Virus record (IMG/VR): IMGVR_UViG_3300023184_000025
Coordinates: 62,001-126,000 of that record
Strand: one strand, 5' to 3'
DNA length: 64,000 bases
The stretch's first letter is position 1; each line of letters opens with the position of its first letter. A program made the translations under genes and the position numbers. Under the pieces are notes generated by a model that saw nothing but the letters and a program-made list of their open reading frames with translations, was not told where the DNA came from and ran no database searches. Below, one piece after another: positions 6,749-62,352 of this stretch.

Positions 6749-8326
6749 ATGCGAGACTTAATCAATATTCTAGATAACTTTGTGTTTGAAGCACGTGGTC
6801 TTAGTGCCAGAAATCCCGGCGATGAGTTTGTACGTACCGGATCCACTGATGATAAGGACAAAATTGTTTTTCAAGGCATGCAATTTTACCCAGATCCGGG
6901 AAAATATCCCAGTTACGAAGATATGATCGCGGCGTTTGATCAAGTACAACGATCAATCAAACACCCAATTGAAAAAATTAATCAACCGTCTGCACGTACA
7001 CTGGCATTTGCAATTGCACAATTTGATACTGCTGTTGGTCGTAGATATCTTGCCAAGTTTGCCTCGGACATTAAACCAGTACGCACCCAAAATACCTTTT
7101 TTCAAACAGTAGATATCCCTGGCGGATTTAATCAAGTTAGTGCAAGAGGCAGCAAAGAAAAAGTTGGATACAAGCCCAGCGATGTGTTAACTAATTTTAA
7201 GAGCCAAACTGCGGCCGGCATACTAGAACAAATTCGATCCAAGTTTGGCGCGGACAGCACTGAGTATCAGGCGGCAGCAATTTTTAACAAGTCCACACAG
7301 TTCCCAATTGTGGTTCCTGCAGGTAACATGGACTTTGGGGCTTTTCGAGATTATTTCTGCGAGATGTTACAACCTATTGCACTGATGAATAGCATGCCAG
7401 TCAAGGGCAACGCCGGTAAGGCCGCTGAACTATTTCTGGGTGGCAACTACAGTGATTGTGTTGTGTCATTCAATGAAGGTGTGGGCGGAGAACTCTATGA
7501 CAGTTTATTAGTAGCGCCAAATGGCAAACAGATTAAACTATCTAGTAAGGGCGCAAAAGGTGCAATGGCATCCAGTGTTAACTTACTCAAGAGTGTGCGT
7601 GAACTTGAAGCGGCAGGGATGACACAGTTTACTGAGCAGTATGCAGATGTAATTGATATCTTGGAAACCATCAACAAAGGCAATCACGACTCGGGACCAT
7701 TGAACCTTGCCATACAACTTGACATGATTGACAAAACTGAAGCACAACAGGTAATGACTTTAAAACAGTACGCTGGTGTAAAGGGCTTTGATATTGACAA
7801 TACCGACCTTACTGACAATCTCAAAGCAATCTACAAAGAACGCAAAGCTGATGATCCATCTAAAATTGTTCCGTTAAATCACCTGGTATCTAGCATTGCC
7901 TACAAAGTCTGTAACGAAATTAATTTAAAAACAAATTTCAGTGAAGCAGGTGCAGATATTCTCAACAACTCTGCGTTTGTTCAAATGTACACTGAAGCTA
8001 AAAAAGGCAAAGAAGAATTTATCATCACTGGGTTTACCACAGTATGGCCCAGCAAGTTGTTTACCGAAGTAACATTAGAAGCACAAAAGAGTTATTCAAG
8101 TACTTCAAGTTCAGGAGGCAAGCTGGTGTTTAATATCAACAAAGAACCTAGAGTAGAACTCAACGTAGAAAAGTCAGCTACTACAAATGCGCCAGGCGCA
8201 AACAAAGCCGGGGAGTTGGTAGACTATATTCCACCACGCAGTGATATCAAAGCGGCGGGTGATGTTGGCACTCCAAAGCACCCTGACCAGGCATTGGGTC
8301 GTAAGCGTCGCCCTGGTGGCCGTTAA
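6749..8326 (+). CDS. Large hypothetical protein, probably head-packaged; possible degenerate PD-(D/E)xK domain
   Basis: TAAATA 4 nt upstream of MRDLINIL; YDS...IKLSSKG motif. Confidence 0.6.
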   Translation: MRDLINILDNFVFEARGLSARNPGDEFVRTGSTDDKDKIVFQGMQFYPDPGKYPSYEDMIAAFDQVQRSIKHPIEKINQPSARTLAFAIAQFDTAVGRRYLAKFASDIKPVRTQNTFFQTVDIPGGFNQVSARGSKEKVGYKPSDVLTNFKSQTAAGILEQIRSKFGADSTEYQAAAIFNKSTQFPIVVPAGNMDFGAFRDYFCEMLQPIALMNSMPVKGNAGKAAELFLGGNYSDCVVSFNEGVGGELYDSLLVAPNGKQIKLSSKGAKGAMASSVNLLKSVRELEAAGMTQFTEQYADVIDILETINKGNHDSGPLNLAIQLDMIDKTEAQQVMTLKQYAGVKGFDIDNTDLTDNLKAIYKERKADDPSKIVPLNHLVSSIAYKVCNEINLKTNFSEAGADILNNSAFVQMYTEAKKGKEEFIITGFTTVWPSKLFTEVTLEAQKSYSSTSSSGGKLVFNINKEPRVELNVEKSATTNAPGANKAGELVDYIPPRSDIKAAGDVGTPKHPDQALGRKRRPGGR

Positions 8327-8898
8327 CGTGCTAGACGGCTGATACTATCGCAGATACCAAATGCAAGTGCTTCTTCTGCACTGAGCCAAACATCATGTGG
8401 TGGCAACAAGCATTGCTTGAGTTTTTCTTCATCAAGTCCAGTTGCCTGCTTATAAAGATTAACCATGCGTTTTTGGCACAGCTCAAATTCTTTAATTGTG
8501 GCAAACAATTCATGCGCTTTGCCTTCGGATCCCCAGCTGAACTGGTGACTTAGAATACTGGTATTTGGAGTTAGAAGTCTACGTCCAGGTGAGCCAGCTA
8601 AAAAGATCAATAAACCTGCTGAAGAAATTTGTCCTAACCCAACTGTTTTAATTGGGATATTGCTACTTTGCATAACATCAATTAGGGCAAAGGCAGATTC
8701 AACTTCTCCACCCTCGCTACAAATCATCAACAGCAATTCTTTTTTCTTTTTCTTAACAACATAGTTGGCATGCAAAATCCACTCGACTACTGGCTTAACG
8801 CTTTCGGTGTCAACTGGACCCATAAAGGCATACATACCAGCTTCAAGTAAGCTTTGTCCAGGGCTAATGTAATCTTCATCATCTTTAATTTGTGTCAT
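8323..8898 (-). CDS. clpP: ClpP-like protease subunit
   Basis: ICSEGG, GQISSAG, ILSHQ, DVWLSAEEA motifs. Confidence 0.85.
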   Translation of the reverse strand: MTQIKDDEDYISPGQSLLEAGMYAFMGPVDTESVKPVVEWILHANYVVKKKKKELLLMICSEGGEVESAFALIDVMQSSNIPIKTVGLGQISSAGLLIFLAGSPGRRLLTPNTSILSHQFSWGSEGKAHELFATIKEFELCQKRMVNLYKQATGLDEEKLKQCLLPPHDVWLSAEEALAFGICDSISRLAR

Positions 8899-11763: not shown

Positions 11764-12471
11764 CTAAGTCTTTGCGCCGGAGAAATAATGTGCGGCGATC
11801 ACCGACTGTACAAGGCTGTCTAGGCTGTTAACAATGGGTATGCCATCCTCAATGGAAATGTTGATACTCAAGGGCAATTCGGTACAGCCTAGAACCACAG
11901 CTTGTGCGCCACGATCGATCAAGCTATGAATTACTTTCATTAGCAACAACTGAGATTCTGTAATCTTGCCGGCCTTGACCAGGTCAATAGCAGGTTGTAC
12001 AAAAAAGTCCATTTCAGCACGATCTGGAACTATACATCTCCAGCCTTGTTGCTCTAGTCTTTCTTGATATAAACCATATTCTATTGTGCCTTGTGTGCCC
12101 ATGATGCCAATGGTGGTATTGTCAAGCTGTAATTTACGGAGCTCGTCGGCTATGCTTTCTACTATGTGTAAGATGGGCACACCCATTTTGACCATGTCAT
12201 TGTACCAAAAATGTGCTGAGTTACAAGGAATAACAATACTGTCACACCCTAGTGTTTTTAATGCCTGTATACCTTGTAACATCAACAGTAATGGCCGATT
12301 GTCGCCGGCCTGTATACTTGTACTACGATCAGGAATTCTTGGCTCATTCCACAACACAAAAGGTATGTGTTCTTGATCGCAAGTGGCCGGCGACTGCCTG
12401 ATTAATCTAGTTACAAACTCTGCTGACGCTGCCGGTCCCATGCCTCCTAGTATGCCAAGTTTTTTTACCAT
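11764..12471 (-). CDS. Aspartate/glutamate racemase
   Basis: GILGGMGP, PCNSAH and GCTELP (both catalytic Cys present). Confidence 0.9.
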   Translation of the reverse strand: MVKKLGILGGMGPAASAEFVTRLIRQSPATCDQEHIPFVLWNEPRIPDRSTSIQAGDNRPLLLMLQGIQALKTLGCDSIVIPCNSAHFWYNDMVKMGVPILHIVESIADELRKLQLDNTTIGIMGTQGTIEYGLYQERLEQQGWRCIVPDRAEMDFFVQPAIDLVKAGKITESQLLLMKVIHSLIDRGAQAVVLGCTELPLSINISIEDGIPIVNSLDSLVQSVIAAHYFSGAKT

Positions 12472-12530
12472 ATTAAAATTAATACTATTAGTATGACTAT
12501 GATGCCAGCAATGACTCCTGGTAGTCTCAT
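12465..12530 (-). CDS. 21-aa single-TM peptide (not in the ORF track)
   Basis: MRLPGVIAGIIVILIVLILIW; overlaps both neighbours. Confidence 0.55.
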   Translation of the reverse strand: MRLPGVIAGIIVILIVLILIW

Positions 12531-13132
12531 TTTTTATCAAACAGTAAACTTGACGCAACAATTAGTACAGTCTGTGCTAACTCTACTTCTGTTGGTTGCT
12601 CTTTCCAACCTACACTTATTTGTCCTATAAACAATCCAGGGTCTGCTGGCACGCTTATGCGACACATGTATGTTACTCCATAGTTTTTATAAGTAAATCC
12701 AATATAACTTTGTGGTGTTAGATACGGACCGCATGGAATTTTGCCTGACATTAATCCAATTACATCTTCGTTGTTGCTGTGATTCTTAGTAAGCAACCCC
12801 ACATTGGTTCCATCATGGACTGTGTCATGTCCTGAGCCTCGTGTAGTTAGATATACTAATTTTCTGGTGTTCAGTAATGTGTTAACTTGGAATACAGCCA
12901 CAAGCTCTGCATCTGTATTCTTTAGTATAAAATTGACTGCTTGTTCATATTTGCCGTTCATCTTGGGCAAGGCCTGTTGAGCACGATAACTTGCCATGAA
13001 GTTATCTTTTTCAGTATAGGCTACCCATCCTAAAAAAGTGAATAGGCAAAGGAACACAACTGTAAATAGGCGAAATGGACTTTCGCCTATAAACTTTAAC
13101 AGTTCAAGCAGTAACTCTTTAAGTTTGTCCAC
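12527..13132 (-). CDS. T4 holin T-like protein (N-terminal TM plus periplasmic GAF-like domain)
   Basis: Size, topology and pattern similarity to T4 T, aligned by eye from memory. Confidence 0.5.
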   Translation of the reverse strand: MDKLKELLLELLKFIGESPFRLFTVVFLCLFTFLGWVAYTEKDNFMASYRAQQALPKMNGKYEQAVNFILKNTDAELVAVFQVNTLLNTRKLVYLTTRGSGHDTVHDGTNVGLLTKNHSNNEDVIGLMSGKIPCGPYLTPQSYIGFTYKNYGVTYMCRISVPADPGLFIGQISVGWKEQPTEVELAQTVLIVASSLLFDKK

Positions 13133-14396
13133 CGGCAGTTACCTCTTTGTCGCATACAAATGCTGTGACTGCTACGTTGCCGTGTACATGACTTGCTGTG
13201 CGAATCATATCCATTAATGGATCAACTGCTATCAACAATACCAATACAGCTTCGCTTGGTAGTTTTAACAAATCACAAACAACTGCTACAGTAGCAACTG
13301 TTAAGATACCTGTTGTACCTGCACTTGCTAATCCGGCTAAAATACTACCAAACAATACAACTGCTAAACCGGTAAGTCCTAGAGGAGCATCATAGATGTT
13401 GGCAATGAATACTGTAGCAATAGCATAGTAAACAATGCTACCAATACGGTTAACAGTGAAACTTAGTGGAACTGTTAGTTCAACTCCACCTTTGTCAAAA
13501 TGTAGTTTATGTAAGGCTTCTTGTGCGTATGGAATACAAGCCAATGAACTACGTGAACTAATAGCAACAATTAATGTTTCTTTAGTTTCACGGATAACAG
13601 TGGCAAGGCTTAATCCACTACGTGCCCAAATCACAGCAGTACCTGCGGCAACTACTAATAGTCCGCCAATGAACTGTTGGAACACAAAGTCAAACATTGT
13701 TAAGAAAATACCAACTCCAACTTTACCAACTTGACTGCTGATCATTGCCAACAATGCAAATGGTAGGAAGTAGTTTAAGAATTTGAAAATACTAATACTT
13801 GCTTGTTGAACACTCTTCAGTACTTCAACCAACATACGTTGTCCTTCTGTTTTCAAGTGACCCAGTGCAACTCCAAATATCAAACAGAAGATAACAATCT
13901 TCAAACTTTCACCATTGTTCAGTGTGGCAAAAATGTTTTCTGGGATAAACTTCTCTGCCATTTTACCAGCACTGACTGCGGGTGCCGTTGACATTGGTTC
14001 GTGAAGGGTAATGTTTAATTCAGTTCCGGTATCTTTGTTGTTGACTAGTACACCAAATTCTGTTTTCTTCTCAGGAGTCATTTCTGTACCTGTTACTAGT
14101 ACAGTTCCTACACCAATAACAGCAGCCAAGAACATACTGCCAACAAAGCCCACAATAATTTTGCGAATTAATTCCTGACTACCTTCTTTTTGTAATAGCC
14201 CAATGATACCAACTAGAATAGTTGCTAACAAAAATGGTAGTACAACTACCTTTAGCAAACTAATATAGATACTACCAATACTGTCAAGACCCATACTAAA
14301 CTCAGGTGCGTAAACGCCGCCTAAAATACCTGCGATAATTGATCCTAAAATAGTCCAAGGACTAGTCAGGAAACTTTTTAAATGTGTTGTTGTCAT
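13119..14396 (-). CDS. Dicarboxylate/amino acid:cation symporter (DAACS, GltP family)
   Basis: IPENIF, SSRSS hairpin-1 motif, DMIRT TM8 motif. Confidence 0.9.
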   Translation of the reverse strand: MTTTHLKSFLTSPWTILGSIIAGILGGVYAPEFSMGLDSIGSIYISLLKVVVLPFLLATILVGIIGLLQKEGSQELIRKIIVGFVGSMFLAAVIGVGTVLVTGTEMTPEKKTEFGVLVNNKDTGTELNITLHEPMSTAPAVSAGKMAEKFIPENIFATLNNGESLKIVIFCLIFGVALGHLKTEGQRMLVEVLKSVQQASISIFKFLNYFLPFALLAMISSQVGKVGVGIFLTMFDFVFQQFIGGLLVVAAGTAVIWARSGLSLATVIRETKETLIVAISSRSSLACIPYAQEALHKLHFDKGGVELTVPLSFTVNRIGSIVYYAIATVFIANIYDAPLGLTGLAVVLFGSILAGLASAGTTGILTVATVAVVCDLLKLPSEAVLVLLIAVDPLMDMIRTASHVHGNVAVTAFVCDKEVTAGGQT

Positions 14397-14405
14397 GCTA
14401 AATCC

Positions 14406-15239
14406 TTATTTCTTTTCAGCTTTGTAGCGATCCATTAACTTTTTAGTGTCAATGTTGTTGTATTCATTCTTAATAACGTAATTAACAATGCTTAACAATT
14501 GAATCGATTTGGGATTTACTGCTACTGCAATATAGTCCACGCTGTCACTAATTGCAATTGTTTTGGTACTAATTGCGGCATCTGGCTTTTCGAAGGCAAT
14601 TTTCTTAATTTCAAATTCGTCACGGTAAGCGGCAGCAATAGTGCCCTTGGTAACATTATCAATAATCACATCCCATTTTTCTTCAGGAATAAATGTTGCG
14701 TTAGGAAAGTTAATACGAGCAAATGTGTCGTAGCTGGAATTCTTGATAAAACTTATCTTGCCATTGAAGTCACGGATAACTTGATATGTTTCTTTACCTT
14801 GACTGTTTTGACTTAGCCATAGACGATTAACAATTAAACTTTGTCTTAGCTTAACATAAGGATCACTGAATCTAACTACTTGTAGTCGAGGACCAGTTAC
14901 TGACAGTTTACTAACTGCAATGTCTGCTTTGCCTTCTCTGATCTGTTCAACAACTTCAGCAAAGCTTTCTGCATCGCGTCTGAACTGCACAGGAACTCCA
15001 AGTAGGACACCAATTCGTCGAGCTATCTCGACGTCAAGACCATGAATGTTATCCCCTTCTCCGGAGAAGAAAGGAGGAACATCTTTTTTGGTCATTGACA
15101 CAACAAGAACATTAGCTTTCTTGATTGCGGCAATATCTGAAGGTAGTGGTACTGTTGAGTTAGCCAGCTGTGCTTGTCCCGTTGCCGGGGTAGTCCACAG
15201 GGTAACTAGTACGGATAGTAATAATAGTAGTTTTTTCAT
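14406..15239 (-). CDS. Periplasmic amino-acid-binding protein (SBP family 3)
   Basis: Signal peptide; PPF, GLDVEIA, GKADIA, FSDPY motifs. Confidence 0.9.
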   Translation of the reverse strand: MKKLLLLLSVLVTLWTTPATGQAQLANSTVPLPSDIAAIKKANVLVVSMTKKDVPPFFSGEGDNIHGLDVEIARRIGVLLGVPVQFRRDAESFAEVVEQIREGKADIAVSKLSVTGPRLQVVRFSDPYVKLRQSLIVNRLWLSQNSQGKETYQVIRDFNGKISFIKNSSYDTFARINFPNATFIPEEKWDVIIDNVTKGTIAAAYRDEFEIKKIAFEKPDAAISTKTIAISDSVDYIAVAVNPKSIQLLSIVNYVIKNEYNNIDTKKLMDRYKAEKK

Positions 15240-15319: not shown

Positions 15320-15346
15320 AAAAAAAGAGCCTTTTTTGGGGCTCTT
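15320..15346 (-). terminator. Intrinsic terminator
   Basis: AAGAGCC/GGCTCTT stem plus U run. Confidence 0.75.
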
Positions 15347-16167: not shown

Positions 16168-16890
16168 TCACGACCAATATTTAGATGAGTCCAAACTATC
16201 CCAATATTTTTTATTGTTGCGATTTGCAAAGTTCTTGACAAGATACTTGGCCATGCCCATGTATCCCATTTTCTTAAACCTGCGCGAATCTTGGCCAAAG
16301 TGGTGTCGAACAATTCGAAACTTTCTAGGGCTGTATTTCCTAGATAAAAAGTAATCTTCCGACGTTGAAAACTGTTCAGGAAATCCTCCAAACTCCTCAA
16401 AACGATCTCTGCGGGTCAGCATGAATGCTCCCACAGCAAATGGACTAATGTATTTCAACACATGATTGATTAGGTTAAATGCTGTGAACCCAATCTTGGC
16501 ACGTAGGTCCTTGTCATAGCATTTAATATTGAGTCCAATAAGATCTAAATTTTTACGCTCAATTAAATTAACTGCATCACGTATAACCGTAGGTTTAAAG
16601 AAGCGAACATCAGCATCAATAAACAAGATGTAAGGTGTAGTTACCAGTCGTGCTCCACAATTTTTAGCAAAGGAAACAGGCCCACCATCTATGATTTCTA
16701 CATTCAAATTGCCCTTTGTTGCTTGGATAACTTCACGGGTATTGTCAGTTGAGCAGTCTGCAATAATAATTCTAGTGCTACCTATCATTTGATTGCGCAG
16801 ATGTGTTAGAAGATAGGAAATATAGTTTTCCTCATTCTTACAAGGAATCACAATAGTAATTTTATCACTGAATTTTATTGTTTCTTGCAT
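16168..16890 (-). CDS. Glycosyltransferase family 2
   Basis: IVIPCKNEE, DCSTD, FIDAD, SED motifs. Confidence 0.9.
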   Translation of the reverse strand: MQETIKFSDKITIVIPCKNEENYISYLLTHLRNQMIGSTRIIIADCSTDNTREVIQATKGNLNVEIIDGGPVSFAKNCGARLVTTPYILFIDADVRFFKPTVIRDAVNLIERKNLDLIGLNIKCYDKDLRAKIGFTAFNLINHVLKYISPFAVGAFMLTRRDRFEEFGGFPEQFSTSEDYFLSRKYSPRKFRIVRHHFGQDSRRFKKMGYMGMAKYLVKNFANRNNKKYWDSLDSSKYWS

Positions 16891-17045
16891 TCTGCTACCA
16901 CCTTAAAATTGTCAAACTTCAGTTTGTACTTAATTGTATTTAATGTCTGCAGGCAAGAGTGTTGATCCAGGAAAGTCAATTCTATCCGTCCCGGAACGTC
17001 CTGAGGATTGTTTACGTGAACTGCCAGTATTATCAGTATCCACAC
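16875..17045 (-). CDS. Small protein (56 aa, not in the ORF track)
   Basis: GTG start with SD AAGGAG; MWILIILAVHVNNPQDVPGRIEL...ECKKQ. Confidence 0.55.
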   Translation of the reverse strand: MWILIILAVHVNNPQDVPGRIELTFLDQHSCLQTLNTIKYKLKFDNFKVVAECKKQ

Positions 17046-17793
17046 GGTCTTTCTCCTTGGTCCATGTAACTATTTCCCATGTACCATCGTGGTGTTCTAC
17101 CAGTGCTGTACAACTTTCAACCCAGTCGCCATCATTCATATACGCAACACCATCTATGGTTTTTATTTCAGCGTGATGTATGTGTCCACAGATCACACCG
17201 TCAAACCCACGCTTCTTGCAGTAAGCGGCAAGATTCTGTTCAAATTTGAATATAAAGTCTACGGCTTTTTTTACTTTGTGTTTAAGATACTTACTAAGAC
17301 TAAAGTACCCAAAACCCATGCGATGACGGATCCAATTGAATTTGCTATTAAGCGATAAAATAATGTCATATGCTTTGTCTCCTAAAAATGCTAGCCATGG
17401 TGCCAGTCTGGTAATGCCATCAAACAGGTCACCGTGTGTGACTAGATAGTGCTTGCCGTTGGCACCTATATGTTCGATTTGATTGTGTATTTCTACATGA
17501 CCAAAACTAAAACCATACGGTATCATGGGTCTTAGAAACTCATCGTGGTTGCCTGCTATATAAACAACACGGGTGCCACGCTTGGCATGACCCAGAACTC
17601 TTCGTACTACATTGGTGTGGCTTTGCTTCCAACGCCATTTGTTTTGTTGTATGCGCCAGGCATCAATGATATCCCCTACCAAATATAATGTGTCGCAGGA
17701 ATTGTGTTTGAGAAAGTTGTTTAACTTATCCGCTTGACAGTCTTTGGTACCAAGATGAACATCGCTGACAAAGATACTGCGGTATGTCTTCAT
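16930..17793 (-). CDS. PlcP/LpxH-like metallophosphoesterase
   Basis: SDVHLG, GDIID, GNHD, HGD, CGHIH, GDWVES motifs. Confidence 0.85.
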   Translation of the reverse strand: MKTYRSIFVSDVHLGTKDCQADKLNNFLKHNSCDTLYLVGDIIDAWRIQQNKWRWKQSHTNVVRRVLGHAKRGTRVVYIAGNHDEFLRPMIPYGFSFGHVEIHNQIEHIGANGKHYLVTHGDLFDGITRLAPWLAFLGDKAYDIILSLNSKFNWIRHRMGFGYFSLSKYLKHKVKKAVDFIFKFEQNLAAYCKKRGFDGVICGHIHHAEIKTIDGVAYMNDGDWVESCTALVEHHDGTWEIVTWTKEKDRVDTDNTGSSRKQSSGRSGTDRIDFPGSTLLPADIKYN

Positions 17794-17824
17794 CTATTAT
17801 TTAAGATAAAGACTAACAAAGATC

Positions 17825-17842
17825 ATTACAATTTTATTACAA
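17825..17842 (-). promoter_or_regulatory. Pho box-like TTGTAAT-AAAA-TTGTAAT
   Basis: 11-bp period direct repeat upstream of the plcP-like gene. Confidence 0.55.
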
Positions 17843-17844
17843 AA

Positions 17845-18594
17845 TCATACTCTTGTTGATATTTTAGCCAACTTTAAAAAGCCAAATAATTTAAGATACA
17901 TCCATCCAACGTCAAATTCAAACCAGCGTCGACTCAGACGAGGATTGCCTGGATCAAGGTGATGGTTATTGTGTAGTTCTTCACCACCAATGACAATTCC
18001 CCAAGGACTGAAGTTACGACTATGATCTTTGGTTACGCCATTTCTGTACCCTATCCAATGCCCAACACCGTTGACAACACCTGCGGCCCAGAATGGAATC
18101 CATAACATCTGAACTCCCCACACTACAAATCCCCACCAGCTGAAACAAAGTAAATTTATGCCCAATAGCAAAGTAATTCCTAAACGACTGTGTGCGGAAT
18201 ATATGTTGTGTTCTATCCAATCATCCGGGGTTCCAACACCATAGGCATTGACCATGTTTGTATCTTTGCTTGCTGAATGATATAATCCTGCTCCTTTGAA
18301 TAACACATGCCAGAATCCATAAACATGCGGAGAGTGAGGATCGCCTTCTGCATCACTATGTCTGTGATGTTTGCGATGTATTGCTACCCACTGTTTGGTA
18401 ACCATGCCTGTTGTCAACCATAACCAGGCTCGCATAAAATGTTCAAGTATCGGATTGAATTCTATTCCCCGATGCGCTTGGCCACGATGTAAAAATAAAG
18501 TAACACATACTATGGTAATATGTGTCGCTGTCAATGTGTATATTAGTGCTATCATGTAGTATATAGCTGACAAAAATAGTGCTACATATAGCAC
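17845..18594 (-). CDS. desA: Membrane fatty-acid (delta-9-type) desaturase
   Basis: His boxes HRGQAH, HRKHH, HNNHH. Confidence 0.9.
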   Translation of the reverse strand: MLYVALFLSAIYYMIALIYTLTATHITIVCVTLFLHRGQAHRGIEFNPILEHFMRAWLWLTTGMVTKQWVAIHRKHHRHSDAEGDPHSPHVYGFWHVLFKGAGLYHSASKDTNMVNAYGVGTPDDWIEHNIYSAHSRLGITLLLGINLLCFSWWGFVVWGVQMLWIPFWAAGVVNGVGHWIGYRNGVTKDHSRNFSPWGIVIGGEELHNNHHLDPGNPRLSRRWFEFDVGWMYLKLFGFLKLAKISTRV

Positions 18595-18609: not shown

Positions 18610-18897
18610 CTAAGCAAGCATCCTAATCAGGCCAATACTGTCAATGGTGGTTAGCAATAGGTAGTTAGCCAACATGCCAAATGATTTCCTAGTATAAGCA
18701 GCCCAAGCATAGAGAGCGCAGCCAGCAATCCAAATAGGGTACAGAATAAGTAGAGGCGGAGTTGGGACTGTTGTTGCCATAGTAATGGAACAGCCAATGC
18801 TAATAGCCCAAGCGAGCAACTCAATAACAAAACGAATTCTATTAGACTTAAAGTCATCTTGTATCCAATCAAATGTAGGTTTTAAAAGTTCATTCAT
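18610..18897 (-). CDS. Small three-TM membrane protein
   Basis: Hydrophobic; ATGA overlap. Confidence 0.7.
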   Translation of the reverse strand: MNELLKPTFDWIQDDFKSNRIRFVIELLAWAISIGCSITMATTVPTPPLLILYPIWIAGCALYAWAAYTRKSFGMLANYLLLTTIDSIGLIRMLA

Positions 18898-19952
18898 GAT
18901 TTGTTGGGGAAAAAATCCTGCATCACACCTTCTCTGTGCAGGTCAAGTGTTACACAATGTATGCCACCGTCCCAAAAATATCTATGTCTAAACGGCACAA
19001 TGTGAGGAGTAATACCATATCTATCCAAGGCATCAAACACTTGTTTGTTGTAGTTAAACACCATGACATTCTTGGGATCAATAATCAACATGTTGACATC
19101 AAACACAGTTTCTTCTACGTATCCTGTCCAATGTCCCAGCCAGGTTTCAATAGTTTCAATTACATCATTGTCGTATTCAAAACCTGGGATCCACCACTTG
19201 CCGCGATTTTTTTGTTTTAAATCTAAAAATGGTTTAACCTTGCTCCAACTTTGGTCTTGAAGATACACCACTTCCCATCCAGGAAAAGTTTTTTCATAAG
19301 TGGGGATGTCACACAAACTAATAATCAATCCAGGACAAACAGGGCAGAATACGCCATCGGCATGACCACCAGTTTTAACTATATGATTTCTTGTATGTAA
19401 AAAATTTTCATTAATTTCTTTTTCAAGATTTCTTACTTGATCTATATTGGGCATTGTTCCAAAATATAAATCTTTTCCTATCCTAGATATCATTGCACCA
19501 TTGATAGTTGGGTGATTACTTATTTTAATTTGATTGCCCTGAGATTGTACATGTTTTACAATATCTCCATAACAGTCTTGCATGGTGGCAGTTAGCTGAC
19601 TGCTATTCCACGTGCTGATATTTGTGTTAGAACCGAGAAACATTTCTGAATCTGGCTTAGATGTATAAAAATCTTCTCCAGCCATGATCATAATATCCCT
19701 CGGACACATTGGTGGTGGAATATATCTTTCGCCTAATATTTTTTCTGTAGGAAAATTAGGCCTTAGTATCTCTACTCCAAATTCTTGCAATTTTTCGATT
19801 ATGTGCTGGTAATCTTCTTCTGTTTCGGTGGCTATTTTTTCCATGAGTTTACGCACATGTGTTACCTTAATCCATGAATAAAATTCAGGTGGGTAGCTAC
19901 GACCTACTACACAAACTTTCAAAGGATCCCAGTGTTGGTACACACTATACAT
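18894..19952 (-). CDS. Amidinotransferase (glycine/inosamine amidinotransferase family), copy 2
   Basis: WDPLKVCVVG, CPRD, GHADG, GGIHCVT motifs. Confidence 0.85.
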   Translation of the reverse strand: MYSVYQHWDPLKVCVVGRSYPPEFYSWIKVTHVRKLMEKIATETEEDYQHIIEKLQEFGVEILRPNFPTEKILGERYIPPPMCPRDIMIMAGEDFYTSKPDSEMFLGSNTNISTWNSSQLTATMQDCYGDIVKHVQSQGNQIKISNHPTINGAMISRIGKDLYFGTMPNIDQVRNLEKEINENFLHTRNHIVKTGGHADGVFCPVCPGLIISLCDIPTYEKTFPGWEVVYLQDQSWSKVKPFLDLKQKNRGKWWIPGFEYDNDVIETIETWLGHWTGYVEETVFDVNMLIIDPKNVMVFNYNKQVFDALDRYGITPHIVPFRHRYFWDGGIHCVTLDLHREGVMQDFFPNKS

Positions 19953-19980: not shown

Positions 19981-20031
19981 GTTAAAGTTATCTTGAATAC
20001 ATTCAGGTGTGGGCTTTAGTAGTTCATTCAT
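19945..20031 (-). CDS. 28-aa chimeric ORF at the duplication junction
   Basis: MNELLKPTPECIQDNFN + SEQVYERHVNV. Confidence 0.55.
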   Translation of the reverse strand: MNELLKPTPECIQDNFNSEQVYERHVNV

Positions 20032-21167
20032 TTTTTATTTGGAAAAAAGTCTTGCATCACACCTTCTCTGTGTAGATCAAGTGTTACACAGTGGATGCCG
20101 CCGTCCCAGAAATATCTGTGTCTAAAATTAATAACGTGTGGAGTAATTCCATATCTACTTAGTGCTTCAAACACGCGATCGTTGTAATTGAACACAATGA
20201 CATTTTTTGGATCAATAATCAGCATGTTGACGTCAAACACAGTTTCCTCAACATACCCGGTCCAATGTCCTAGCCAATTTTCTACAACATCAACCACATT
20301 CTGATCGTATTCAAAACCCGGTATCCACCATTTACCGTTGTTTTTGGCTTTTAAATCTTTGAATGGTTTAATGTGGTCCCAACTCTGTCCTGGGAGATAA
20401 ACAACTTCCCAGCCTGGAAAAGTTTCTGCATAAGTTGGTACATCTTTTAAACTAATAATTAGTCCAGGACAAACCGGACAGTAAACAGCATCTCCGTGAC
20501 CACCGGTATTGATAACATGTGTACGATTATTTGGAAACTCTTGGTTGACCACTTGTTTGATCTTGTTCTGATCGTCAGTGTACGATTCTGTGGCAAAGTA
20601 TAAGTCTTTACCAATTCGAGATGCCATCATTCCTTGCACACAGGGATGAGGACTGGTCTTTATTATATTACCCTGTGATCGAATACGATCAAATATTTTT
20701 TTATAAGGGGAGTGATGACGAAATACTTCTTCTTTGCTTGCATCAAGCCAATTGTGTACTTCAAGGCATTCCTGTTGTACATGACTTGGTAAATCAGTGA
20801 TGTCTACTGATTTTTCTGGCCAGCTTGGATCTTTAACTACGTTATAGAATTCTTCCCACTGATTTTTTGGTCTATAAAATGTCTCACCAATCATAACCAT
20901 AATGTCTCTGGGTTGCAGAGGAGGAGGTGTAAAAGGAGTCCTTGTCTGATTAAACCATTCTACAGGAATCTCAGGACGCAATACCTCTACACCAAAAGTT
21001 TCTAGCACCGTTGCAATTTTTTGCAGATCTTCTTCTGTTTCAATGGCAATACGCTCAAACAGTCTGCGCACATGTGGGACTTTGATCCAGTTATAGAACT
21101 CAGGTGGGTAGCTACGACCTACTACACAAACTTTTAATGGGTCCCAGTGTTGGTACACACTATACAT
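20028..21167 (-). CDS. Amidinotransferase, copy 1
   Basis: Same motifs; paralog of 18894-19952. Confidence 0.85.
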   Translation of the reverse strand: MYSVYQHWDPLKVCVVGRSYPPEFYNWIKVPHVRRLFERIAIETEEDLQKIATVLETFGVEVLRPEIPVEWFNQTRTPFTPPPLQPRDIMVMIGETFYRPKNQWEEFYNVVKDPSWPEKSVDITDLPSHVQQECLEVHNWLDASKEEVFRHHSPYKKIFDRIRSQGNIIKTSPHPCVQGMMASRIGKDLYFATESYTDDQNKIKQVVNQEFPNNRTHVINTGGHGDAVYCPVCPGLIISLKDVPTYAETFPGWEVVYLPGQSWDHIKPFKDLKAKNNGKWWIPGFEYDQNVVDVVENWLGHWTGYVEETVFDVNMLIIDPKNVIVFNYNDRVFEALSRYGITPHVINFRHRYFWDGGIHCVTLDLHREGVMQDFFPNKK

Positions 21168-25140: not shown

Positions 25141-25655
25141 AGATGTCCAGTAATTTGAAGAGTGTACCTTGGTTCAAGTCCAATGTTAGCTGCCATATGT
25201 GGAGTATCGTATGACCATTCAACCACGGTGCCGGCTTGCCAATTAACAACAGGTTCTCCTAACACTTCAAGATAATGTCCTGACTTCCAGTCTTCTACCA
25301 GAACAATAGCTCGTCTTATTTTGTGCTCTTGACCTTTTAATTTAAAAATATCAACATACCTAACATAAAGATCACTATGGGCTGGCATCACTGTTCCAGT
25401 ATGCATTCTGTAATAAGCAGTACCAATATCTTTCCATCCCCGAGATTCAAACAAATTAATAAATTTTTGATTCCACGATGGTAATTGATGTCTCATGTCA
25501 CAAAGGTCACCAGTAATTTTGCTCTGATATCCTTGATTGATCCAATGGTTAACACTTATTGGATCGTTAAACGGTTCATTGATGTAGTCAAGATGTTTGT
25601 ATTCATTATCCCAGAATACATCAATGTTGTACTTACGACTGTCGTGTGTTGCCAT
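25137..25655 (-). CDS. 2OG-Fe(II) oxygenase-like protein
   Basis: HSD...H...RYTLQITG. Confidence 0.65.
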   Translation of the reverse strand: MATHDSRKYNIDVFWDNEYKHLDYINEPFNDPISVNHWINQGYQSKITGDLCDMRHQLPSWNQKFINLFESRGWKDIGTAYYRMHTGTVMPAHSDLYVRYVDIFKLKGQEHKIRRAIVLVEDWKSGHYLEVLGEPVVNWQAGTVVEWSYDTPHMAANIGLEPRYTLQITGHL

Positions 25656-26871
25656 AGTGGATAATTTTGTAACCTGTCATATCAACCATTTTGCGCCATG
25701 GATCTACAATGATACTGCCAGCTTCAATAGGAGTATAGAATGTATCGTCTCGTACATCTCCAGTGTATCCATAGGTAATTTGTCGATTGTGTGCCATTAA
25801 TAATACCACAGGGCCTTTGACAGATGCAATTACATCGTTGTTGTCATCTGCCAATGGATCTAAATATTTAACGGTGCGGCCTGCTTCTTTAATGTAGTGC
25901 CCAATTAAAGTGCTGTAGCTACCAATACAATAAGGAACATCAGGCTTGTATGCTTTGCCATGAATGATAATTGGTAAATTTTTCTTTTCAGCAATATCAA
26001 CAAGAAATAGTGCTAGATTTTTTGCTTGAACTTCTCGAGCATGCATGATTGTATCAAACAAGTCATATCCAATGTCATACTCTTCAGCCAGCCAGCGCAA
26101 GGCAATGTTGTCACGTGGGTGGCATGCTCCTGCATCGCCCATGCCAGCTGTCATGTACTTGGGTCCCATAATACGCATGTTTGACTGTGCCAGTGCGTCA
26201 GTGACAACGTCAACGTTGATGTTACCAATCTTTAGTGCAAAGTCTTGAATCATGTTGACCAGTCCTACCTTGGCACTGATGAATGTATTATAGAAGATTT
26301 TGATGGCTTCGCATTCGTCCCAGGTGCCAGTCACATAACGTGGATTGTTTTTCATCAATGGACGATAGATATCTATTAGATCTCGCATTTCGCTGGCATC
26401 GCCTGTTTCTGTACCAATCATGACCATTTCAGGATTGGCCATGTCCCATTTTACGCTTCCCATGGCAATCAAATAAGGGTTGTATAAAAACTGATGTTTG
26501 TTATCTAACAACGTGGCAAAATGTCTACGTGTAGTTCCTGGAAGTACTGTAGAAATCAACACTACTCGTTTTGGTGTGGTGGCAAATTTGTTTACTTTAA
26601 CCAGGGCATCCTTAACTGCGTCGTGTCCAAAATCTTTTGGCTCCATATGACTAGATGGTACACTTCCGTCATACCCTTCGGTATGCGGTGTTGGTACAGC
26701 AATGAAAATCCAGTCACTCTTGTTGACTACCTCTTCGATGTCACAAACTTTAACCGACTCGCTTTCTCGTGGGTAAATATCATAACCACGTACAGTATAT
26801 TTTTCAGCGAAGACTTCTGCGCAATCCAAACCTAGCTTACCTAGGCCAATAAACCCAATATTATTTGACAT
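25633..26871 (-). CDS. UDP-glucose/GDP-mannose dehydrogenase family protein
   Basis: GLGKLG, AVPTP, STVLPGT, GACHPRD, AYKP motifs. Confidence 0.9.
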   Translation of the reverse strand: MSNNIGFIGLGKLGLDCAEVFAEKYTVRGYDIYPRESESVKVCDIEEVVNKSDWIFIAVPTPHTEGYDGSVPSSHMEPKDFGHDAVKDALVKVNKFATTPKRVVLISTVLPGTTRRHFATLLDNKHQFLYNPYLIAMGSVKWDMANPEMVMIGTETGDASEMRDLIDIYRPLMKNNPRYVTGTWDECEAIKIFYNTFISAKVGLVNMIQDFALKIGNINVDVVTDALAQSNMRIMGPKYMTAGMGDAGACHPRDNIALRWLAEEYDIGYDLFDTIMHAREVQAKNLALFLVDIAEKKNLPIIIHGKAYKPDVPYCIGSYSTLIGHYIKEAGRTVKYLDPLADDNNDVIASVKGPVVLLMAHNRQITYGYTGDVRDDTFYTPIEAGSIIVDPWRKMVDMTGYKIIHYGNTRQS

Positions 26872-31023: not shown

Positions 31024-32220
31024 TTATATGTTATCAGGATTATTTATTAGGTCGGCATTGATATTCACGCATTTAATTTCTCGCTTGACATAGTCTCGTA
31101 GTTTAAACATGTGCGGCATTAGTGCTCGTTCAACTTCGGATTGCAAAGCTCTTGCTCCAGTTCCTGAATTAATTGCACGTTTTACAATTGCGTCAATACT
31201 GCTAGATTCAAAATTTAGTTCAACTTGATCTTGTTTGAAAATCCAACGATATTGATCTAAGATATTGTGTTTTACTTCAGTCAGTACACGAGTCATTGAT
31301 GACTCATCTAATTCTTCCAAAGTAACTACACTAGGAAAACGTCCTACAAATTCAGGAATCATTCCAAAACGCACCAGGTCGTCTGGAGTAACCTGGGTCA
31401 GGTCAACATCTCTGTTAGAAATCATTTCTGTGTTAAATCCAATATTTGATCCGTTGATACGATTTTTTAAAATGCTGTTAAGGCCAACAAATGCTCCACC
31501 TGTAATAAACAAAATTTTACTGGTGTCAATTTCGATCATTTCGCCTCCGGGATGTTTTCTACCACCGGAGTTTGGAATACGACATACAGTACCTTCAACT
31601 AGCTTTAGCAATGCTTGTTGAACACCTTCTCCTGATACGTCCCTGGTGATACTAGTGCTTTCACTTTTACGTGCAATTTTATCAATTTCATCTACAAATA
31701 CAATTCCATGCTGTGCTTTTTCAACGTCATTACCCGATGCCGCATATAATCGACTAATCAACATTTCAACGTCGTCACCAACATAGCCTGCTTCAGTAAT
31801 ACTGGTAGCATCTGCAATAACAAACGGAACATCTAAATATCTTGCCACTGTCTTGGCAAGAAGTGTTTTACCTGATCCAGTTGGGCCAAGCATAAGAATG
31901 TTGGCTTTGGATAGTTCAATTTCTGTTCCTATGTTTTGTAGTCGTTTGTAATGATTAACAATTGCAACGCTAAGAACAACTTTTGCACGATCTTGACCAA
32001 TAACGTATTGATCAAGAAATTCTTTAAGCTTCATGGGATCCATGCGTTCTACGTCATTGATGATTTCTGCTGGGGGCTGGTCTTCTAACAAGTCCTGGCA
32101 TAATGTAACACATTCGTTGCAGATTGCAACATCGTCACTGACAATTAGTTTTTTTACTACGTCTTTTTCTTTACCACAGAAGCTACAGGCGTGTTTGTGT
32201 TGTTGCAGTACAGCAGTCAT
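31024..32220 (-). CDS. clpX: ClpX ATPase
   Basis: CSFC/CNEC zinc domain, [28 protein letters not shown] motifs. Confidence 0.95.
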
Positions 32221-61564: not shown

Positions 61565-62352
61565 CGGTACTGTATTAAATCAATGTTTCCGTCAGATATA
61601 CCAAATGATAATCTTAGATAAGGATGATACCCCTCAACGTTGATGCCTAATCTTTCAACTGCATGAATAAAGTTTATTTCTGACACAGTATTACTTGTTT
61701 TTAAATCTTCAAAGTCTACATCGTACCATTCAACAGTATTGGCTGTGGCATCTGACGATCCTTGTACTTGAAGTGTGCCAGTAAAGTCCACTGGATCAAT
61801 TTGGAATGTAGTAATACGTGTACCATTTGTGGTAATTGTACTGGTGTAATGGATAGAGCTGTCAGGGGCTTGGCTTGGGATAGTTAATTCTTGGCTGGCA
61901 ACAAAAGCTGGAAATACGCTGTCTACAATATCAATATTCCCACGAGCGCCTGCATAGTCGTCTGTGAATACTGCTTGATTTAAAACGCCGGACGTAATTT
62001 CTAAACTCCAACTAGCGGGCTGTGCTTGAAAATATGTTGTCTCTTCGGCAGTGACAGTTACTTTAGCTCTACCTGTTGGTGCATTAAGTGTTACAAGCTC
62101 TTTGGCATATAACAAATTTTCTCCGTCTTGACTAATCATACGAAACGTAAACGTTGCGCCTGTGATGTTTACAGGTTTTTGGTCCTGGTTTAGAAATTGG
62201 AATAAAATAACATTATCCACTCCTAAATTTAATTTTAAGTCTTTTGCGTACACTGGTTGCCACCTTCTATCAAAAGTTGAGCCAATGCCTGACGTGTCAA
62301 TCAGAATTACCTGTTGGATTTGCTGATATAAATAGGCAGTGGTTGAATACAT
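61561..62352 (-). CDS. Putative virion structural protein (BppU-like beta domain)
   Basis: TAAATA 62369-62374; F.NQDQKPVNITG motif. Confidence 0.55.
   Translation of the reverse strand: MYSTTAYLYQQIQQVILIDTSGIGSTFDRRWQPVYAKDLKLNLGVDNVILFQFLNQDQKPVNITGATFTFRMISQDGENLLYAKELVTLNAPTGRAKVTVTAEETTYFQAQPASWSLEITSGVLNQAVFTDDYAGARGNIDIVDSVFPAFVASQELTIPSQAPDSSIHYTSTITTNGTRITTFQIDPVDFTGTLQVQGSSDATANTVEWYDVDFEDLKTSNTVSEINFIHAVERLGINVEGYHPYLRLSFGISDGNIDLIQYR

Follow-up and report, generated by a model that had tools for sequence, protein, structure and literature searches.

Members of the DAACS/SDF family (Pfam PF00375, TCDB 2.A.23) are best known from GltPh and GltTk, the archaeal Na+:aspartate symporters, in which the Na+ ligands are [S/T]92-93, N310, [M/S]311, [D/E]312 and [D/E]405 (GltPh numbering; PMC12668577). 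The H+-coupled bacterial members GltP, GltT and DctA carry acidic substrates and share a signature of a hydrophobic residue at position 92, L311 and N405, with D312 retained, and the reconstructed ancestor AncInt (PDB 9BGY, 9BGZ, 9BH0) binds and moves aspartate without Na+ or H+ coupling and without any solute-binding protein (SBP), although it keeps D312, D405 and the T92/S93 pair (PMC12668577). An SDF transporter has also been proposed as the cysteate importer next to the cysteate racemase CuyB and the lyase CuyA in Bilophila wadsworthia (PMC11193023), and is itself uncharacterized. DctA acts as a co-sensor of DcuS/DctB, which ties a canonical, coupled DAACS protein without an SBP to a periplasmic-sensing kinase. 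SBP-dependent secondary transport is represented by the TRAP (DctPQM, SiaPQM) and TTT (TctABC) systems and by the proposed TAXI-GltS class (PMC12344293), in which a periplasmic SBP gene is translationally coupled to an elevator-type secondary transporter gene, natural SBP-transporter fusions exist and there is no ATPase. Phages also carry nutrient-uptake genes such as cyanophage pstS, a phosphate SBP that works with the host PstCAB and raises host nutrient uptake during infection.

The window analyzed here is a stretch of 64,000 nucleotides (positions 62,001 to 126,000) of IMG/VR record IMGVR_UViG_3300023184_000025, a 345-kb freshwater phage record rated 99% complete. It carries a DAACS gene whose Na+-binding residues are largely replaced, next to an SBP gene and a racemase gene. 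A sequence-only reading had pointed to altered ion-coupling motifs in this gene and had suggested that the protein is uncoupled, SBP-dependent or signalling, possibly a transceptor. The observation of the altered motifs proved to be correct, whereas the interpretation placed on it was supported only in part.

The DAACS protein and its cassette

The DAACS gene, for which the sequence-only reading had given no strand, lies on the minus strand at 13119-14396 and encodes 425 aa from an ATG start. The protein matched Pfam SDF with 219.3 bits against a cut-off of 27.9, with residues 14-414 aligned to profile positions 3-384 of 387. The AF2 model was confident (pLDDT 89.3, pTM 0.88), with the eight TM segments plus HP1 and HP2 of the family and with TM7 unwound at residues 316-317, and Foldseek returned full-length matches to GltTk, GltPh, AncInt and ASCT2 (probability 1.00, TM up to 0.77). 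In contrast, all curated NCBIfam subfamily models scored far below their cut-offs (DctA 115.6 against 513, GltP 107.7 against 638, SstT 56 against 308), and identity to GltPh, GltTk and AncInt is 20-24%.

To determine which residues had changed, the protein was aligned with HMMER to PDB 9bgz/9bgy, and the motifs were verified by translation. NRIGS (residues 316-320; 13437-13451, minus strand) aligns with NMDGT in TM7, and DMIRTASHVHGN (residues 396-407; 13176-13211, minus strand) aligns with DMARTTVNVTGD in TM8. In GltPh numbering this gives M311R, D312I, T314S, N401H, T403H and D405N, with N310, G313, D394, R397 and T398 kept. The TM3 segment GFVGSM (14133-14150, minus strand) aligns with Y88-S93, so that the Na3 ligands T92/S93 read S/M. 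The HP1 tip SSRSSLACIP (13530-13559, minus strand) keeps the equivalents of R276/S277/S278, and the HP2 tip reads SAGTTGIL (13302-13325, minus strand) where GltPh has GVPG. The departure from NMDGT lies within the family and is not grounds to exclude the protein from the superfamily. The residues S92, M93, N310, R311, I312 and N405 do not satisfy the Na+ signature, and of the H+ signature only N405 is present. The residues expected of an acidic-amino-acid-selective DAACS protein are in place, as D396, R399, T400 and R282/S283/S284 of the phage protein align to D394 (amino group), R397 (side-chain carboxylate), T398 and the HP1 positions, but N401, which ligates the alpha-carboxylate in GltPh, is His here. 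The sequence-only reading had stated that the acidic-substrate Arg is kept, that the NMDGT Asp and the last TM8 Asp are Na+ ligands that are lost, and that Asn at the last position occurs in H+-coupled members; these statements agree with the alignment and with PMC12668577.

The cassette runs on the minus strand, and its 5' edge is marked by a terminator-like hairpin plus T-run (15325-15346, minus strand) that closes the upstream gene. The SBP gene (14406-15239, minus strand) encodes a periplasmic SBP_bac_3 protein of 277 aa counted from the MKK start, with a Sec-type signal peptide, although the ORF extends upstream to 15278. It ends 9 nt before the DAACS start codon, matched Pfam PF00497 at 4.5e-17, had amino-acid-binding proteins as its best PDB relatives, and is the only SBP_bac_3 gene in the phage genome. 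Downstream of the DAACS gene lies a gene (12527-13132, minus strand) for a 201-aa phage-specific protein with one N-terminal TM segment (residues 20-38), whose GTG start overlaps the DAACS stop by 14 nt and which is present only in the phage versions of the cassette. This protein, assigned to phrog_31287, gave no Pfam or NCBIfam hit and has no recognizable signalling domain, and its distant relatives in Cronobacter phage S13 and a spring-water phage are not next to transporters. An ESM Atlas look-alike cluster hinted at T4 holin T, but PF11031 found nothing in the genome even at E <= 10, and the AF2 model (pLDDT 47.8) was too poor for a fold search. The last gene (11764-12471, minus strand) encodes a PLP-independent two-Cys amino-acid racemase of 235 aa with predicted catalytic Cys83 and Cys196, and its ORF extends upstream to 12561 from a TTG. 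The racemase matched Pfam Asp_Glu_race at 3e-40 and PDB aspartate racemases, and scored 216.1 bits on the NCBIfam CuyB model (NF052483; cut-off 190) and 167 bits on asp_race. The sequence-only reading had taken the racemase to fit Asp/Glu specificity; since NCBIfam classifies it as cysteate racemase CuyB, just above the cut-off, the substrate may be cysteate rather than Asp or Glu.

The sequence-only reading also did not place the gene in a T4-like jumbo phage, which is indicated by a Gp23 capsid protein (3e-100). The cassette was found on at least 75 viral contigs and is conserved at 76% identity with different flanks. Across viral copies dN/dS is 0.04-0.12, and N-R-[I/V/L]-G-S was found in 69 of 69 readable viral copies. 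The GC content of the cassette equals that of the window. In the GenBank phage collection the only hits to the DAACS protein were about 25% identical and mostly sat on mislabelled bacterial contigs, so no cultured phage in that collection carries a relative. The T4 late-promoter consensus TATAAATA lies 5 nt before the SBP start codon, but the motif is not enriched in the window (3 found, 4.6 expected) and no promoter is claimed; a sigma-70-like promoter scan likewise gave no more than chance.

Subfamily signature and gene neighborhoods

To determine whether the motif is peculiar to this gene, relatives were collected by exhaustive search, which gave scores of 170-340 bits against about 100 bits for canonical structures. 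The motif is the hallmark of a large subfamily. Among 137 representatives, R311 is present in 113, D312 in 0, D405 in 1 and a hydroxyl residue at position 92 in 26, while D394 is present in 103, R397 in 89 and T398 in 111. R397 occurs only together with R311 (89/24/24/0), and His at position 401 is rare (3 of 137). In the tree, 17 canonical sequences fall on one side of a branch with SH-aLRT 100 and 59 SBP-linked sequences on the other, and the same motif is conserved across phyla in cellular genomes. The sequence-only reading would have failed if an NRIGS-type motif were standard in a characterized, normally coupled subfamily; as far as could be found this subfamily is uncharacterized, so that condition does not hold. 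Literature searches of open-access papers and bioRxiv, which cannot exclude an earlier description elsewhere, for example in TCDB notes, found no paper that links DAACS/SDF to an SBP.

The gene neighborhoods were then compared, using related loci collected with a 10-sequence alignment. A same-strand SBP_bac_3 gene lies within 300 nt in 50 of 54 Arg-type loci from named genomes, against 0 of 9 canonical loci (Fisher p = 3e-8, with loci that are not phylogenetically independent). Start and stop codons of the two genes overlap in some loci, for example by 4 nt in the related locus L008, and 45 of 65 adjacent SBPs show a signal-peptide-like segment. No ABC permease or ATPase family recurs beside these loci, and none was found anywhere in the phage genome. 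Natural fusions also occur. In the N-terminal fusions (representatives P0231 and P0233) the order is signal peptide, SBP, an extra TM, then SDF, whereas at least four C-terminal SDF-SBP fusions (P0201, P0207, P0212, P0165) have no TM segment between TM8 and the SBP-like domain, which is then predicted to be cytoplasmic, so that an SBP link does not always mean periplasmic delivery. Complex prediction for the SBP and the DAACS protein gave ipSAE values of 0.60, 0.60 and 0.61 with a best control of 0.00, partner pLDDT of at least 85 and agreement between runs in at least 98% of contacts. That mark was reached by 58 of 80 solved complexes and 2 of 110 mismatched pairs, but the values lie at the weak end of the range, since a score of 0.60 or under was seen in only 7 of those 80 solved complexes and in both of the mismatches that passed.

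The racemase is the only other neighbor that recurs across phyla, lying within 1.6 kb in 30 of 60 Arg-type loci against 0 of 12 canonical loci, and these racemases score 174-235 bits on the CuyB model. True CuyB genes in Desulfobacterota score 220-284, which places the phage racemase at the low edge of that range. No PALP/CuyA lyase gene was found in the phage genome, and no lyase recurs beside the cellular modules. In the Desulfobacterota sampled, among which Bilophila itself was not identified, the CuyB-adjacent SDF genes are canonical (NMDG, R397, acidic TM8 end) and have no SBP. Two separate SDF lineages have thus been recruited to the same racemase type.

Some relatives are wired to signalling proteins. 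SDF-dCache-adenylate/guanylate cyclase fusions (P0163, P0225, P0230) carry a TM segment on each side of the dCache domain, 18 cyanobacterial loci have a dCache-HAMP-HisKA-HATPase-REC-cyclase gene beside the module, the P0140 SDF-SBP pair sits among FHA, PP2C and Ser/Thr-kinase genes, and Litoricola loci lie next to T6SS genes. Neither a fusion nor a conserved adjacency to a signalling output domain was found in the window or in locus L002, and the relative at 76% identity contains no signalling domain.

Proposed function and its implications

With moderate confidence, we propose that the gene encodes the membrane (elevator) component of a binding-protein-dependent, Na+-independent uptake system built on the glutamate-transporter (DAACS/SLC1) fold. 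In this model, the secreted SBP captures an acidic alpha-amino acid in the periplasm, with aspartate, cysteate or a close analogue in L or D form as candidates, docks on the DAACS protein and hands over the ligand, which would be held by the retained D394, R397, T398 and the HP1 serines. The Na1 and Na3 sites would not form because D312, D405 and the TM3 hydroxyl pair are gone, and the near-invariant Arg at the Met-311 position would stand in for a bound cation and/or ligate a substrate carboxylate, so that HP2 closure and translocation would no longer need Na+. In the cytoplasm the CuyB-like racemase would interconvert the enantiomers. The trio of SBP, Arg-type DAACS protein and racemase is a cellular module found in Proteobacteria and Cyanobacteria, with cellular carriers such as Nodosilinea, Limnohabitans and Rhodobacterales, and in this view a lineage of freshwater T4-like jumbo phages captured it from Proteobacteria, inserted a phage membrane protein of unknown role, and maintains it as an auxiliary nutrient-acquisition cassette under purifying selection. 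The family, predicted fold, motifs, clade structure, gene linkage, fusions and selection were established by the analysis itself, while SBP dependence, the substrate, Na+ independence, transport and binding as such, the role of the Arg and the benefit to the phage are inferred. Of the options raised by the sequence-only reading, SBP dependence is strongly backed by comparative evidence, yet it rests on linkage, fusion and one weak complex score. The role of Arg-311 is pure inference, the substrate remains ambiguous, and without ion coupling the system could only equilibrate, unless H+ is coupled through residues that could not be identified.

Compared with GltPh and GltTk, the protein has the unwound TM7 loop, both hairpins and the substrate ligands, but differs in the motif, the lost Na+ ligands, His at position 401 and the SBP partner. 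It shares N405 with GltP, GltT and DctA, which have no SBP, but has S92, R311 and I312. It may work like the TRAP and TTT systems but is not a member of them, because the membrane component is unrelated to DctQM, TctAB or GltS and the SBP belongs to SBP_bac_3, the ABC-type amino-acid binder family, and not to DctP, TAXI or TctC. The Na+ sites also appear to be abolished, whereas DctP-type TRAP needs Na+. TAXI-GltS was proposed as a new SBP-dependent class from the same kinds of evidence, and DAACS is not among the families listed there as recruiting SBPs (PMC12344293). As with the SDF gene of Bilophila, an SDF gene is linked to a CuyB-type two-Cys racemase, and unlike cyanophage pstS, the phage cassette also brings the membrane transporter and a downstream enzyme, which makes a self-contained three-part pathway plus one phage-specific protein.

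Other explanations were considered and appear unlikely. The protein could be an ordinary, self-sufficient H+-coupled transporter or uniporter for Asp, Glu or cysteate, with the SBP only raising the local substrate concentration or serving a host ABC importer. This would fit N405, the SBP-free and uncoupled transport of AncInt, which was the top PDB hit, and the pairing of canonical SDF genes with CuyB without an SBP, but only one of the three H+-signature residues is present, D312 is gone, and the adjacency counts, the tethered fusions, the absence of ABC parts nearby or in the phage genome and the weak complex score speak against it. About equally unlikely is the transceptor or co-sensor that headed the sequence-only reading, in which the SBP and DAACS protein form a ligand-sensing unit read by a signalling partner, as DctA is read by DcuS/DctB, with net transport secondary or absent. 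The signalling fusions and neighborhoods of relatives are consistent with this, the ancestral role of the clade could be sensing, and loss of the ion-coupling residues fits a protein that need not accumulate substrate. However, this reading has no support for the phage copy, whose cassette holds no recognizable signalling domain, the 201-aa protein included. In addition, the substrate-binding residues and both hairpins are intact and under purifying selection, and a cytoplasmic racemase that recurs across phyla makes sense only if substrate enters the cell.

Still less likely is an exporter or exchanger, in which the racemase makes a D-amino acid that the DAACS protein releases, for example for envelope modification, with the SBP acting in recapture or as a receptor. 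Uncoupled elevator transporters are bidirectional, envelope-modifying genes lie nearby in the window, and knockout of the Anabaena gene all0342, cited here as a member of the wider DAACS family only, raised net amino-acid uptake, which the authors read as loss of export (PMC4500139). On the other hand, periplasmic SBPs are hallmarks of import in ABC, TRAP and TTT systems and impose inward directionality, and translational coupling and tethered fusions argue for delivery to the transporter. A decaying passenger gene might explain the lost canonical motif and the low NCBIfam scores, but is very unlikely and is contradicted by the dN/dS values, the 69 of 69 invariant viral motifs, the confident model with its intact fold and the conservation of the motif across cellular phyla.

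A broader reading is possible but more tentative, at somewhat less than even likelihood. The Arg-type clade may be a previously unrecognized class of binding-protein-dependent secondary transporter on the SLC1/DAACS fold, in which the three Na+ sites have been replaced by a tethered arginine, an SBP_bac_3 protein, normally an ABC-importer part, gates an ion-independent or differently coupled elevator, different lineages have turned the same SBP-DAACS unit into a signal input for cyclases, kinases and T6SS regulation, and a lineage of jumbo phages carries the complete uptake-plus-racemase pathway as an auxiliary module.

Glutamate-transporter homologues are the main model for elevator transport and for ion-substrate coupling. 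A natural, widespread clade in which D312 is absent and D405 nearly so, an Arg sits at the Met-311 hinge of the NMD loop in most representatives, and a periplasmic binding protein is an almost constant neighbor would provide a direct test of how coupling can be replaced by a tethered charge and an external gate. It would also provide a further family of SBP-dependent secondary transporters beside TRAP, TTT and TAXI-GltS, and a case of an ABC-type SBP family recruited by a secondary carrier. The links to cyclases, kinases and T6SS genes offer a testable route to new transporter-based sensors. The recurrent racemase suggests a dedicated route for D- or L-acidic amino acids, or for the sulfonate cysteate, in aquatic bacteria, these being components of dissolved organic nitrogen and sulfur, and the presence of the cassette in at least 75 viral contigs shows that jumbo phages can carry the genes for a whole predicted uptake pathway (binding protein, carrier and enzyme) and not just single auxiliary genes.

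Rewired motifs in the DAACS protein and its subfamily

To determine whether the unusual motifs reported by the sequence-only reading are genuine, the ORF at 13119-14396 was translated and aligned by HMMER to solved structures. The ORF is located on the minus strand and encodes a 425-aa, full-length member of the sodium:dicarboxylate symporter family (Pfam SDF, 219 bits). In the alignment, NRIGS (residues 316-320; window 13437-13451) lies under NMDGT, and DMIRTASHVHGN (residues 396-407; window 13176-13211) lies under DMARTTVNVTGD. In GltPh numbering this corresponds to M311R, D312I, T314S, N401H, T403H and D405N, while N310, G313, D394, R397, T398 and the HP1 residues R276/S277/S278 are kept, and the TM3 pair T92/S93 reads S/M. 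The AlphaFold2 model is confident (pLDDT 89.3, pTM 0.88) and breaks TM7 exactly at the N-R position, and Foldseek matched it over its full length to GltTk, GltPh, the reconstructed uncoupled ancestor and ASCT2. The replacement of the two motifs, as originally observed, is therefore confirmed.

To determine whether this motif is restricted to one gene, the protein was compared with curated subfamily models and with its relatives. All of the curated NCBIfam subfamily models scored far below their cut-offs (DctA 116 against 513, GltP 108 against 638, and SstT 56 against 308). A word-based search returned only metagenomic relatives at 76% identity or more, and an exhaustive search of cluster representatives was therefore performed, which found 317 clusters below 1e-30; the best 150 scored 170-667 bits, compared to about 100 bits for canonical structures. 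Across 137 full-length representatives, Arg occupies the Met-311 position in 113, Asp-312 is never present (the position is F, Y, I, V or L), Asp-405 is present once with Asn the commonest residue at that position, and a hydroxyl residue at position 92 occurs in only 26. In contrast, D394 (103), R397 (89), T398 (111) and G313 (125) persist. R397 occurs only together with R311, as 89 sequences have both, 24 have R311 only, 24 have neither and none has R397 only. Asn-401 is kept in 35 of the 48 clade members that lack R397 but in only 17 of the 89 that have it (p about 1e-9, although the sequences are not independent), and the binding site seems to be remodeled in a coordinated way. His at this position, as in the window, is rare (3 of 137).

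The published signatures are [S/T]92-93, N310, [M/S]311, [D/E]312 and [D/E]405 for Na+ coupling, and hydrophobic-92, L311 and N405 for H+ coupling (PMC12668577), and this clade fits neither. In a maximum-likelihood tree, 17 canonical sequences fall on one side of a long branch with SH-aLRT 100, while all 59 sequences of this clade fall on the other.

Linkage to a binding protein and a racemase

In the window, an SBP_bac_3 gene with a Sec-type signal peptide ends 9 nt before the DAACS start codon. Among named bacterial genomes, 50 of 54 Arg-type loci have a same-strand SBP_bac_3 gene within 300 nt, compared to 0 of 9 loci with canonical motifs (Fisher p = 3e-8, although related species are not independent). 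Start and stop codons often overlap, for example by 4 nt in locus L008, and the adjacent SBPs mostly carry signal-peptide-like segments (45 of 65). No ABC permease or ATPase family recurs beside these loci, and the phage genome encodes none, whereas it has exactly one SBP_bac_3 gene and one SDF gene.

Natural fusions also exist. The SBP-SDF proteins have a signal peptide, the SBP domain, one extra TM segment and then the SDF domain. However, the C-terminal SDF-SBP_bac_3 fusions (proteins P0201, P0207, P0212 and P0165, and also P0202 and P0218, none of them in the window) have a purely hydrophilic linker after TM8 and no TM segment before the SBP-like domain. That domain is therefore predicted to be cytoplasmic, unlike that of the N-terminal fusions, and it may be a regulatory ligand-binding domain. 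Several cellular loci also carry a second, highly divergent SDF paralogue just downstream of the first or of the racemase (L013:3389-4720, L033:6558-8267, L034:6959-8407, L044:5787-7232, L057:5626-7158, and L068). In Litoricola, for example, this paralogue has LLCNMGIV in TM7 and no TM8 Arg. These paralogues might form heteromers or act as regulators.

A complex prediction of the DAACS protein with the mature SBP gave weak support only, with ipSAE values of 0.60, 0.60 and 0.61 and 0.00 for all three controls. That mark was reached by 58 of 80 solved complexes and 2 of 110 mismatched pairs, but scores of 0.60 or under are its weak end, as they were seen in 7 of the 80 solved complexes and in both of the mismatches that passed. 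Partner pLDDT was at least 85 and the runs agreed in at least 98% of contacts. No SBP-DAACS complex appeared among the PDB matches, and the score is thus unlikely to be recall of a known complex. A 2025 paper proposed TAXI-GltS as a new SBP-dependent secondary transporter class from the same kinds of evidence; it names only ABC, TTT and TRAP as SBP-recruiting families and does not mention DAACS (PMC12344293). Targeted literature searches of open-access papers and bioRxiv found nothing on SBP-linked DAACS proteins, and public annotations of clade members are generic.

The only other neighbor that recurs across phyla is a two-Cys Asp/Glu-type racemase, which lies within 1.6 kb in 30 of 60 Arg-type loci and 0 of 12 canonical loci. 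The racemase of the window scored 216 bits on the NCBIfam equivalog for cysteate racemase CuyB (cut-off 190) and 167 bits on asp_race. Racemases from the cellular modules scored 174-235 bits, while true Desulfobacterota CuyB genes scored 220-284 bits, so membership is borderline. The CuyB paper notes an SDF transporter beside CuyB and CuyA in Bilophila and proposes that it imports cysteate (PMC11193023). In the Desulfobacterota sampled here, the CuyB-adjacent SDF genes are canonical (NMDG motif, acidic TM8 end) and have no SBP. Two different SDF lineages, both bearing R397, have therefore been paired with this racemase type, which supports an acidic alpha-amino acid as the substrate (aspartate, cysteate or similar), without distinguishing among these or between enantiomers. 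Neither the phage nor the cellular modules carry a CuyA-type lyase, which fits simple chirality conversion feeding general metabolism.

Phage context of the cassette

The window is part of a 345,154-bp virus record rated 99% complete, which has a T4-type major capsid protein (Gp23, 3e-100). The Gp23 match, which lies outside the window (G000:C1:193317-194306 on the contig of the virus record; locus L090), contains one in-frame TAA that could be a gene boundary, a frameshift, an intron or an assembly error. The window itself holds a ClpP-like protease (8323-8898, minus strand) that also matches head-maturation protease PHROGs, a ClpX-like AAA+ ATPase with the ClpX zinc finger (31024-32220, minus strand), a DNA ligase and a ribonucleotide reductase. 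Just upstream of the cassette lies a run of envelope- or lipid-related auxiliary genes (16168-18594, minus strand) that includes a GT2 glycosyltransferase, a calcineurin-like (LpxH-like) phosphoesterase and a fatty-acid desaturase, and a UDP-glucose/GDP-mannose dehydrogenase lies further on (25633-26871, minus strand). Two tandem paralogues of 352 and 379 aa (18894-19952 and 20028-21167, both minus strand) have nearly identical N- and C-terminal stretches, no Pfam domain, and only an unknown-function PHROG (phrog_25854).

The four-gene cassette (SBP, DAACS, 201-aa protein, racemase) is conserved at 76% identity on a 192-kb contig with different flanks. In the relative at 76% identity, the cassette is followed by an acetyltransferase, a RimK-type ATP-grasp ligase and a GT4 glycosyltransferase (L002:11127-13642), and the ligase could use the acidic amino acid that would be imported. 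The DAACS gene occurs on at least 75 IMG/VR contigs, including genomes of 331-353 kb. One viral contig (IMGVR_UViG_3300027749_002876, 524,565 bp; loci L120 and L159) carries two copies of the cassette about 195 kb apart at 82-83% identity to the window, and it may be a concatenated or chimeric assembly of two related phages. The dN/dS values against the window copy are 0.04-0.12, and N-R-[I/V/L]-G-S is present in 69 of 69 copies. The GC content of the cassette equals that of the window. In the tree, the phage genes nest inside a proteobacterial clade beside Rhodobacterales and Limnohabitans-type sequences.

The 201-aa protein (12527-13132, minus strand), which is inserted between the DAACS and racemase genes, is found only in the phage versions of the cassette. 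It has one N-terminal TM segment and no assignable function, with 602 viral-type homologues and distant relatives in T4-like Cronobacter and Citrobacter phages outside any transporter context.

Signaling relatives and the inferred role of the system

The sequence-only reading had proposed that the transporter may have altered coupling (uncoupled, SBP-dependent or signaling) and possibly acts as a transceptor. Support for a transceptor was found elsewhere in the clade. Arg-type SDF domains are fused to dCache plus an adenylate/guanylate cyclase, with a sensible topology, in proteins P0163, P0225 and P0230 (Treponema and others), and in 18 cyanobacterial loci a dCache-HAMP-HisKA-HATPase-REC-cyclase gene lies beside the racemase-SBP-SDF module (among loci L014-L035, for example L035:7993-11250). 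These arrangements are a Rosetta-stone hint of transporter-coupled signaling. An SDF-SBP pair on the contig of protein P0140 is embedded among FHA, PP2C, Ser/Thr-kinase and DUF4280 genes, and Litoricola modules (loci L034, L037 and L038) lie next to the T6SS genes VasE and DotU; such pairs may serve as a sensory input to T6SS regulation. The phage cassette has none of these, and the proposed interpretation is therefore only partly supported, as the SBP link is backed by the comparative data while the signaling role finds its support in relatives.

The family, the motifs and the gene linkage are established by the sequence comparisons. In contrast, transport itself, its dependence on the binding protein, its substrate and any expression of the cassette are inferred, and the role given to Arg-311, as a tethered cation and/or carboxylate ligand, is likewise an inference that does not rest on inspection of side chains. 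In summary, the DAACS gene is a phage-borne member of a large, apparently undescribed, SBP-linked and Na+-site-free branch of the glutamate-transporter family, and on the present sequence evidence it most likely imports an acidic amino acid in a binding-protein-dependent way.
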